Shown piece by piece: positions 42,854 to 45,953 of a stretch of DNA of 64,000 bases (position 1 is its first letter; the number at the start of each line of letters is the position of its first letter). Below the pieces are notes generated by a model, which was given only the letters and a program-made list of their open reading frames with translations, had not been told where the DNA came from and made no database searches. This DNA comes from Podarcis pityusensis (lineage: Eukaryota). The stretch is taken from assembly GCA_964106645.2 (NCBI GenBank), contig OZ067039.1, one strand, 5' to 3'. A program made the position numbers and the translations under genes.

Positions 42854-42909
42854 GAATATTCTGAAGCAATTCTGTTTTAGGGTGGTGGCATGGAATTAGT
42901 GTTGCCTCG
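42854..42909 (+). promoter_or_regulatory. putative editing-site complementary sequence (ECS) pairing with the IQ exon
   Basis: 42854-42897 is antisense to 45844-45887 with 32 Watson-Crick pairs, 7 G:U pairs and 5 mismatches, no gaps; 42901-42909 can also pair with 45827-45835. Confidence 0.85.
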
Positions 42910-45822
42910 GGTCAACTTGATTCCCCTTGTTTTTATTGAAATACAGACACGTGCTTCAGAATAGCGAGTCGTGCCTTCCTAAATTAAGCACATGGAGAGC
43001 ATTTGTTGAGTGTGCATCTAGAGAATAAACCATAATACATTTTCCTCTACAGAGTGCAATTAAAGGTTCAGCTCCATTTCATTGCTGCTTTCAAAGTGAA
43101 TATTGATTTTCCATTTGCATAGACAACAAAGTACAGTGAACTTGTCTAGAGAAAAAGAATAGATAATGCCACTAAAATGCAGAAGACAGAACACTGCCAA
43201 ACAGGAAATCTTTCACAACTTTAGGCAAATTGCAGTGAAAAGGGAATAGACATTTTTGCAACTATTCATGCCTGGAAGTTGACATACAGGAAAACATAAT
43301 AAAATGTTTTATTGTAATGTAATGTTTTATTAAAAACACAAGATAGGAAAGCTGCAAAGTAAACAACAATGTGAAGAAGACTTTAAGAATTTTGGTTAGT
43401 AGGAGAAGTGTAAATACTCCTAAATAAATAAATAAAAATTATTTAATTTTTAATGTACTGCAAAGGTTCCAGGATTATAAAGAAATGCATTATATAAACC
43501 ACGGGTTTTTCACAAACTTACATGATAGGTCAGATTCCTGCATTCACTTAAGTATTATCTCTCAAACAGGATGTTATAGCTAAGAAAAAGCCAAATCCCT
43601 GGTTTTTTTGTGGTAAGTAGACTTAATAAAGGAATAATGAATCTAGCAAGATTAATCATTACTGACCGTAAACCCATTTCCTTAATTTACTCATAATTGC
43701 CAAGAGGTTTAAAATGTCAAATTACTTGCAAATCCTCAGGTTCAGTTTAACACTGATTAATTAACACTGCTAATATATGATGGAAACAGGAAGAGAAGTC
43801 ACTTAAGTGCAGATTCCTTTCTTTTACCCCAAGATTTTATCTAAATTCCCCATTCTTTAACCTTCAGAGGCCACTGAAGCCCATCTGCCACCCTCCTGTC
43901 TTCTCCCCAAACTTGTTTTGCTGAAATTCGTTCCCTTGGGTTTTTCTTTTACGTTGATTTCCACTCTGTTTAAAGTATGATCACTTCTGCTCCACGGCTT
44001 TCCTTCACATATCTAATTATGTTTGTCTTTCTCAAAAGTCTGGACAGATTTTGTACCCATGGCTGTCCATGAAATATATTGTGGGTATGTCCCTTTTGCA
44101 CCTAGCTTTTTAACTACATCCAGGAACTTGCTGCTTTGCAGATGTGAATTGTGTGTATGCCCACATTTACACATGCATATACGGTGCAACCCCCACCCCA
44201 ACTTATGGTACAGATAACTCACATCTTACGCTTATTTAACTTACGAGATTGCAGCTTTGGCTAACAAAAAAGCTTGTTGGTCTTCCCTCACAGCTTTTAA
44301 GACTTGATCCCTAGTACTGAAGCCCCTAAACTTGCATTGTAATTAGTGGAGGTTTATAGACCATGTATCCTTTAATAAGGCATTTGTTACATGGTGAGAG
44401 CAGGCTCAAATGATGCTATTTAAGAGTCGGAATGGAACAGACAGGGCTCCCAACCAAGCTACTTCAAATCTTTTTGTTTCTTGTTTTCTTTCATAAGATA
44501 TCCTTTAACATCTTCTAACATATCACATACCACACCAAATCCTATCAGGCCCTACCTGGTCTGGTATACGGTCAATTTCAGGATTTATTGTTTAAAGCTA
44601 TCTACAATTGAATAATTTGGGACTGCAGATAATGTAAATGGATTAGTTTTGACACAGAGACCTCTTTTAAATATAAAATCCATAGTTGATAGACATAGGT
44701 AATTGAAACTGACTAAAAGCATATATTCCCGTGAAGTGCTGTGCCATTGTATATATCCTTATCTGGCATTAAGTCTCTTTCAATTCAGTTGGGCTTACTT
44801 CTGAGTAGATATATATAGGATTGCACTACCCACGGCTTTTTCCTCCTCCTCCCTCCTTAAACCAGTACAAAATACAAGGAAAAGAAACACAGTGTTCTGT
44901 TTGGGAACTGTTCTAATAAAAGGAAACTACTAAAAGACATTTCACTAAATTGCCAATAATGGCAAATATAGTCCAATAATTAACAATGTCCGCTCATCGT
45001 GCTTTGTCTTTTTTAAATAACCTAGCAGTATTAATACTGTCAGATAAATGTAAAAGCTAATGCATGCTGGAAAGCATTTGTATTAACACCTAGTCTTGAT
45101 ATGAACACTTCACAATTTACCTGCCTTACTAATGATCTAAGATAGAGTTACGTTCTATCTTTGCTGTTATTTTGGAACCAATCACTGCCAAAAGAGAGTA
45201 TTAACTTCTCTCCTAAAAGACTACCAAACTGGACTCTCAGGTGAAAGTTTACTAAATTTAGTCTCCAGGGTTTGCCCCCAAACTCTGGTTTCTAATGCTT
45301 GATATATTACTTAATATGAATATTGCCTGCTAGAGGTGTTCAGGGAGTGAGATAATTTATATGCCACTTTAATAGGTCAGACAGAAACAATAATAATTAG
45401 ATATATTTGAATTCACTATGGTGATAATTTACTTGAAAGGCAGCAAATACGAAAAGGCCCTCCTCCTATTATAGTTTTTATAACACTCTGGTTCAAACTG
45501 ATCAAAGTTTGCATTTTCAGAGTCATGTAGACATGTGCATTTTAAAAGATAATCTTACCTCTTTGAACTTTAATAAATTAGCATCTTTTCCTTTCTTAGG
45601 AAATAGTTCACCTATCAACTGCTTCTACTGCCTAGTCTTGTTTGCTTGCTAAAACTGCTTTATGCTAGATTTAGTCTGCCTTATTATCAGGAGCAACAAC
45701 AACAACAAAAACCCTTGTGCCAATGGCACTGTCACATTTTTTCCTGATTTGGATAAGAGTATATATTGGCTACTAATGAAATGTGCTGACTTGGGAGAGA
45801 TCTGTCTGGTCTGTTCATTTAG

Positions 45823-45953
45823 ATGATGAGGTAACCGTGGGGAAGTTCTATGCCACCTTCCTGATACAGGACTACTTTAGGAAATTCAAGAAACGGAAAG
45901 AACAAGGACTGGTGGGGAAACATCCTGCAAAGAACACCACAATTGCACTACAG
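45823..45953 (+). CDS. CACNA1D: exon 41, IQ domain ([43 protein letters not shown])
   Basis: 131 nt, phase 1 to 0; IQDY codons ATA CAG GAC TAC at 45864-45875. Confidence 0.97.

Follow-up and report, generated by a model that had tools for sequence, protein, structure and literature searches.

Editing of the IQ motif of Cav1.3 has been described in the mouse, where the editing site complementary sequence (ECS) of Cacna1d lies in the preceding intron, 3700 nt away, and forms a 40-bp duplex interrupted by four bulges (Huang et al. 2018, PMC6101491). Within this duplex, the adenosines of the ATA and CAG codons are located in the stem between bulges 2 and 3, and the TAC codon's adenosine in bulge 2. 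Deletion of the ECS ends editing in a minigene, and CAG (the Q/R site) is a weakly edited position (PMC6101491). The same work found editing to be under the control of SRSF9, a splicing factor that binds around the mouse ECS, with enhanced crosslinking and immunoprecipitation (eCLIP) peaks upstream of the ECS, and that editing of the mammalian IQ motif is tightly confined to neurons (PMC6101491). Mice in which the ECS is knocked out lose all editing, while the Cacna1d mRNA level and C-terminal splicing are unchanged, and conservation of this editing extends from zebrafish to humans (Zhai et al. 2022, PMC9371748). The CACNA1D I/M site belongs to the evolutionarily conserved recoding sites of Pinto et al. 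(2014, PMC4053846), in which its editing reaches 0.25 in rat, 0.17 in cow, 0.08 in opossum, 0.67 in platypus, and 0.5 in zebrafish cacna1da, and the sequence of the site is conserved in chicken and zebrafish; these entries score the I/M site rather than a structure and sample no reptile.

Here, we analyzed a 64,000-nt stretch of contig OZ067039.1 (assembly GCA_964106645.2) from the lizard Podarcis pityusensis, referred to below as the window. The original prediction, made from the letters of the window, was that an intronic segment pairs with CACNA1D exon 41 about 3 kb downstream and supports ADAR recoding of the Cav1.3 IQ domain. Our results lead us to conclude that this segment, 42854-42897, is very probably the ECS of lizard Cav1.3 and would form the duplex that directs ADAR2 recoding of the IQ motif. 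The duplex, its uniqueness, its presence in the global fold, the identity of the gene, and deep conservation with covariation are established in this analysis. For gene identity, exons were searched singly, and splice sites and frame were read from the sequence. The peptide of exon 41 is identical to human Cav1.3 at 42 of 43 residues (chain 7uhf_A, residues 1599-1641), Cav1.2 chains have IQEY instead of IQDY and diverge after GK, and exons 39-41 match consecutive stretches of Pfam Ca_chan_IQ. By these matches the host gene is CACNA1D (Cav1.3), and the assignment of the pairing exon to exon 41 stands. The parts of the gene that concern the duplex are the following.

41419-41520, plus strand: CACNA1D exon 40, the pre-IQ part of the Ca_chan_IQ domain (splice sites; Pfam positions 20-52; aligns to exon 40 elsewhere)
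41521-45822, plus strand: intron 40, 4302 nt, host of the ECS (GT at 41521, AG at 45821-45822)
45823-45954, plus strand: CACNA1D exon 41, with the IQ motif (IQDY; 7uhf_A identity, Pfam Ca_chan_IQ positions 55-77)
42854-42897, plus strand: predicted ECS core, antisense to exon positions 45844-45887
42901-42909, plus strand: second helix strand, pairing with 45827-45835, the first exon bases past the 3' splice site

When 42854-42897 is set against 45887-45844 in an ungapped antiparallel arrangement, a scripted count over the 44 positions gives 32 Watson-Crick pairs, seven G:U pairs, and five mismatches (A:A at 42858/45883, C:A at 42867/45874, A:C at 42869/45872, U:U at 42876/45865, and U:U at 42883/45858). 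This recount reproduced exactly the numbers and all of the coordinates that had been reported from inspection of the window, including the extension of the stem by 42901-42909 onto 45835-45827, which contributes seven Watson-Crick and two G:U pairs. The ECS begins 1334 nt from the start of intron 40 and lies 2990 nt upstream of the exon bases with which it pairs. With 39 of 44 positions paired, this is the top offset among 63,786 in the window, where the runner-up reaches 31 and the mean is 16.4 (SD 3.2). The same segment has the lowest duplex energy among 3173 window tiles, and the comparison with shuffled controls that the original prediction had called for separates it clearly: 1000 dinucleotide shuffles gave -32.5 ± 4.6 kcal/mol and went no lower than -52.4, as compared with -63.5 for the duplex. 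As a discriminator, energy has its limits, in that a few unrelated tiles reach -52 kcal/mol, and the ungapped pair count separates the ECS far better. The offset scan and the shuffles exclude a chance origin of the complementarity. The long-range duplex is also present in the minimum-energy fold of the whole of intron 40 and exon 41, where it extends to 42839-42913 x 45822-45915, about 65 bp, and it formed with both of the two boundaries used for folding (4465 and 4575 nt).

The reading frame places the Ile codon ATA at 45864-45866, the Gln codon CAG at 45867-45869, and the Tyr codon TAC at 45873-45875, giving three candidate editing adenosines.

45866, plus strand: predicted I-to-M adenosine (ATA), base-paired to U42875, within the helix that separates bulges 2 and 3
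45868, plus strand: predicted Q-to-R adenosine (CAG), paired with U42873, in the helix
45874, plus strand: predicted Y-to-C adenosine (TAC), facing C42867 in a 3x3 internal loop

Both the pair count and the fold bear out the arrangement originally described, with the Tyr adenosine opposite a C and the Ile and Gln adenosines inside the stem; in the global fold, the unpaired exon bases are 45883, 45872-45874, 45865, and 45858, and 45866 and 45868 are paired. The genomic A equivalent to 45866 is found in all eight of the loci compared below. In the mechanism that we favor, the intronic ECS of the pre-mRNA would fold back over about 2.9 kb onto exon 41 to form an imperfect duplex of 44 bp, or about 65 bp with its extensions. 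This duplex would present the adenosines at 45866, 45868, and 45874 to ADAR2 before the intron is removed, and editing at these positions would recode IQDY. The role assigned here to the duplex in directing ADAR2 editing is carried over from the mouse minigene and ECS-knockout literature.

The open frame of exon 41 was searched against public contigs, yielding single-exon open reading frames (ORFs), the longest of which were retrieved as loci (L001 and so on). The comparison set leaves out P0056 and P0068, which are among many contigs with Cav1.2-type matches, as well as P0029 and P0030. Eight loci were compared, namely the lizard and seven other Cav1.3-type loci; the exon peptide of one of these, L007, equals the human Protein Data Bank sequence, so that a mammalian source is possible, and it is included in the list below, yet none of the conclusions depends on it. 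Wherever a Cav1.3-type locus extends far enough upstream, a partner of this kind is present, with 36-40 of 44 positions paired at 874-3536 nt upstream.

L001 and L004: 38/44 pairs, 3536 nt upstream
L002 and L003: 38/44 pairs, 3431 nt upstream
L007: 38/44 pairs, 3507 nt upstream
L006: 39/44 pairs, 3321 nt upstream
L008: 40/44 pairs, 1055 nt upstream
L009: 36/44 pairs, 1952 nt upstream
L010: 39/44 pairs, 874 nt upstream

The exon peptides of L006 and L008-L010 differ from that of the lizard far more than the human peptide does, and these loci probably represent fishes or fish paralogues. Against these fish-like loci, the sole non-repeat part of the lizard intron that aligns by local blastn is a 59-nt segment, 42850-42908, and its identity to L006 and L008 (96.6%) is above that of the exon itself (85-88%). 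The amniote-like loci align by local blastn to the lizard intron over a broader region.

42748-42964, plus strand: conserved intronic block including the ECS and its flanks (77-87% identity over 215-281 nt in L001, L002, and L007; blastn and alignment)

Pairing is conserved in detail as well as in extent. All eight loci have a C facing the Tyr adenosine, the two U:U mismatches, and the G:U pairs at 42860, 42871, 42878, and 42892, and the remaining three G:U pairs alternate only with G:C. Two pairs show compensatory change (42857/45884, from U:A to C:G in L009, and 42880/45861, from G:C to A:U in L010), five further changes are one-sided and preserve pairing, and pairing of the second helix is maintained in the other loci via one-sided changes. 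The check for conservation and compensatory change that the original prediction had proposed is thus answered by seven other loci and two compensatory pairs. By this comparison, purifying selection on the ECS of vertebrate Cav1.3-type loci is very strong, and pair-preserving as well as compensatory changes have taken place. Neither the Cav1.2-type locus L012, in which intron 40 is about 110 nt, nor the Cav1.4-type locus L014 yielded a partner above background in the pair scan or by blastn.

Within L006, an ORF for a DDE_3 (Tc1/mariner-type) transposase lies in intron 40 at 8494-9291, between the ECS and exon 41; this insertion shows that the spacer tolerates insertions while the ECS stays unchanged. 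Two dinucleotide microsatellites of the window, at 46952-46995 and 41985-42015, gave spurious blastn matches to every locus, and the former lies inside a long artefactual minus-strand ORF.

Three points weigh against assigning the element to Cav1.3 editing with full confidence. Two-sided covariation is confined to two pairs, both in the most divergent loci, which are possibly paralogues. Orthology with the mouse ECS rests on layout, a flanking 14-mer, and conservation rather than on a direct alignment of letters. Finally, editing in the neurons of this lizard would follow from phylogenetic bracketing by mammals and zebrafish, together with ongoing selection. As to the flanking 14-mer, the 14 mouse bases that form the 3' part of the primer for the minimal ECS construct match the window at one place only, with 12/14 identities on the plus strand at 42830-42843, 11 nt before the ECS; since about 0.4 matches of that quality are expected across the 64 kb, its position is not due to chance. 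The primer flank is found at the same offset from the ECS in the amniote-like loci, and in L007 it matches the mouse primer at 13/14.

Several other explanations for the duplex deserve consideration. An inverted duplication of the exon could yield an antisense exon copy, and the excess of G:U pairs that the original prediction took as a sign of selection on RNA pairing is by itself weak, as a split of seven G:U to two A:C over nine transition-type departures gives p ~0.09 (one-sided binomial, hand calculation); it is the cross-species pair table that carries the case. However, chance complementarity is excluded by the offset scan and the shuffles, and a neutral copy would neither stay near-identical amid an unalignable intron nor show compensatory changes. 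To regard the complementarity as a functionless chance match or a decaying duplication is hardly credible, and by the cross-species data this explanation is already refuted. It could also be argued that the structure has been retained as an inherited element while the sites go unedited in the lizard, for instance through low ADAR2 or high SRSF9 in its neurons, and the tight restriction of mammalian editing to neurons (PMC6101491) lends this idea some plausibility. We consider it very unlikely, given that 42850-42908 matches distant loci at 96.6% identity in an intron that otherwise does not align, which argues for continuing selection, and that reptiles are bracketed by mammals and zebrafish, in both of which editing has been reported.

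The duplex might instead serve mainly to control the splicing of exon 41, with editing as a by-product or absent in this lineage. The first 13 bases of the exon are taken up by the second helix, which would delay the use of the 3' splice site or mask it; in the global folds, the helix 42897-42913 x 45822-45839 adjoins the AG at 45821-45822, and the binding of SRSF9 around the mouse ECS, where it controls editing (PMC6101491), is in keeping with such a role. The fine structure nevertheless suits ADAR better than simple occlusion, in that all eight loci place a C across from the Tyr adenosine and the mismatches on either side of the helix with the predicted editing sites do not vary, and ECS deletion in the mouse ended editing while leaving the Cacna1d mRNA level and C-terminal splicing unchanged (PMC9371748). 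A primary role in splicing is very unlikely in our view, and roles in splicing and editing are not mutually exclusive. An ECS duplex that directs ADAR2 recoding remains the explanation that we prefer.

A further element close to the ECS may bear on how the exon duplex forms.

42953-42963, plus strand: 11-nt ECS complement, perfectly complementary to ECS positions 42857-42867, predicted to close a local stem-loop of about 110 nt

This segment is complementary at 11/11 positions to the 5' third of the ECS, at bases that would subsequently lie opposite the exon's Tyr-codon side. A complement at 99-110 nt past the start of the ECS is found at 11/11 in L001 and L002 and at 10/11 in L006 and L008, and such 11-nt matches occur only once or twice per intron. 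In exon-free local folds of five loci, the ECS closes on the 11-nt complement in 5/5, with a pair probability of about 0.99 for most pairs, and the local helix is modeled at -14.9 kcal/mol, compared with -7.5 when the exon pairs with those ECS bases. Forcing the local helix in a 3.4-kb context abolishes the whole exon duplex, at a cost that rises from 7.4 kcal/mol at 37°C to 8.2 at 25°C and 10.9 at 15°C, which implies that the local helix and the exon duplex are exclusive and that the exon duplex wins at equilibrium. In these models, the local fold could form during the approximately 2.9 kb of transcription that precede exon 41. It is possible, if somewhat doubtful, that the 11-nt complement locks the ECS in a stem-loop that exon 41 must displace, so that this competition, rather than melting of G:U pairs, would set the level of editing. 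If so, competition could be the step at which splicing factors, transcription speed, or temperature act, and the conserved complement would offer a simple and testable handle on how Cav1.3 editing levels are set.

The 5' part of the ECS complicates this picture, as 42850-42865 is a perfect 16-nt palindrome, by virtue of which 42953-42963 is also a direct repeat of 42850-42858. The pairing and motif-repeat readings of 42953-42963 are inseparable from sequence alone, and the segment may be a kinetic guard, a competitor, or a second copy of a protein-binding motif. Its origin as a decayed sense copy of the exon was rejected, as local alignment scores were no better than those of shuffles. In the mouse, editing of a short construct without the downstream element was unaffected under ADAR2 overexpression (Huang et al. 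2018, PMC6101491), which indicates that the downstream element is not required for editing.

Other short segments near the ECS and the exon are conserved. About 100 nt upstream of the ECS (42748-42853) are conserved in L001, L002, and L007 and are not complementary to the exon. This region includes a pyrimidine run ending in CAG at 42811-42823 that resembles a 3' splice site; the mouse SRSF9 eCLIP peaks are likewise upstream of the ECS. Past the ECS, a TCCCC motif (42922-42926) occurs in 8/8 loci, mostly 65-75 nt from the ECS start, with L009 at about 105 nt. Its complement in the exon is GGGGA at 45839-45843, which remains unpaired in the global fold, and the motif may make a third contact or bind a protein. 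Following exon 41, the first ~50 nt of the intron (45955-46006) align to L001 and L002, similar ORF tails are seen in several amniote-type matches, and the segment constitutes a conserved element near the 5' splice site. Near-identical words of the exon 41 stretch (45723-46054) also occur in 22 small runs from 12 organisms and 10 studies, all stored as contigs and none registered as RNA; several of these contain a share of about 0.36, as the exon alone would give, and the runs may be transcriptomes or capture data of related species.

The original prediction also raised, as a speculation, that a stem rich in G:U pairs could make recoding temperature-dependent in an ectotherm. This idea finds no support here, as four of the seven G:U pairs are invariant in the eight loci and the modeled duplex is stable to 60°C. 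The thermal model was a nearest-neighbor one, applied to a minimal hairpin built like the mouse construct, with the 2.9-kb spacer omitted. In it, the stretch of helix surrounding the I/M and Q/R sites has a probability of 0.99 at 5°C, which falls to 0.97 at 37°C and 0.90 at 60°C; the hairpin half-melts near 80°C. A melting switch in the physiological range was accordingly rejected, the modeled helix staying at or above 0.90 up to 60°C. Judging from the eight loci, the G:U pairs are ancestral and not specific to lizards or ectotherms, which removes the basis for viewing G:U content as an ectotherm adaptation. Temperature-responsive editing has been described in Drosophila (Rieder et al. 2015, PMC4299485), with which the speculation shares the idea that duplex stability couples editing to body temperature; unlike the Drosophila case, the modeled lizard duplex keeps its stability between 5 and 60°C, with G:U pairs that are ancestral.

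Taken as a whole, this is very probably the form that a known, vertebrate-wide editing element takes in a reptile, a reading that is well founded and not new. The suggestion that the mechanism would be amniote-wide is consistent with the literature and is not new, as conservation from zebrafish to human has been published (PMC9371748, PMC4053846). Published editing over this range already contains the amniote-wide statement, and a lizard would be expected to have the mechanism. Novelty is therefore limited to the species and to a sequence-level view of conservation, plus the conserved downstream complement of the ECS. In these respects, the locus adds a reptile member to a recoding system that has been documented for mammals and zebrafish, with an intronic partner that is better conserved than its exon.

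The likeness to the Cacna1d ECS of mouse, rat, and human is close, involving the same gene, exon, intron, and three adenosines at a kilobase distance (3700 nt in mouse and 2990 nt here). Set against the published text description of the mouse duplex, the lizard element also agrees in length (about 40 bp) and in having four bulges, the second of which contains the Tyr adenosine, while the helix that follows contains those of Ile and Gln. The differences are those of species and spacing only; editing, ADAR2, and ECS dependence have been demonstrated in the mouse and are predicted here. More broadly, the Q/R and R/G sites of GRIA2, the Q/R site of GRIK1, and the I/M site of GABRA3 share with this locus an exon-intron duplex formed before splicing, ADAR2, and an intronic partner conserved like coding sequence. 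However, the partners in GRIA2, GRIK1, and GABRA3 are mostly found in the downstream intron, within a few hundred bases, whereas the CACNA1D partner lies upstream, at about 3 kb.

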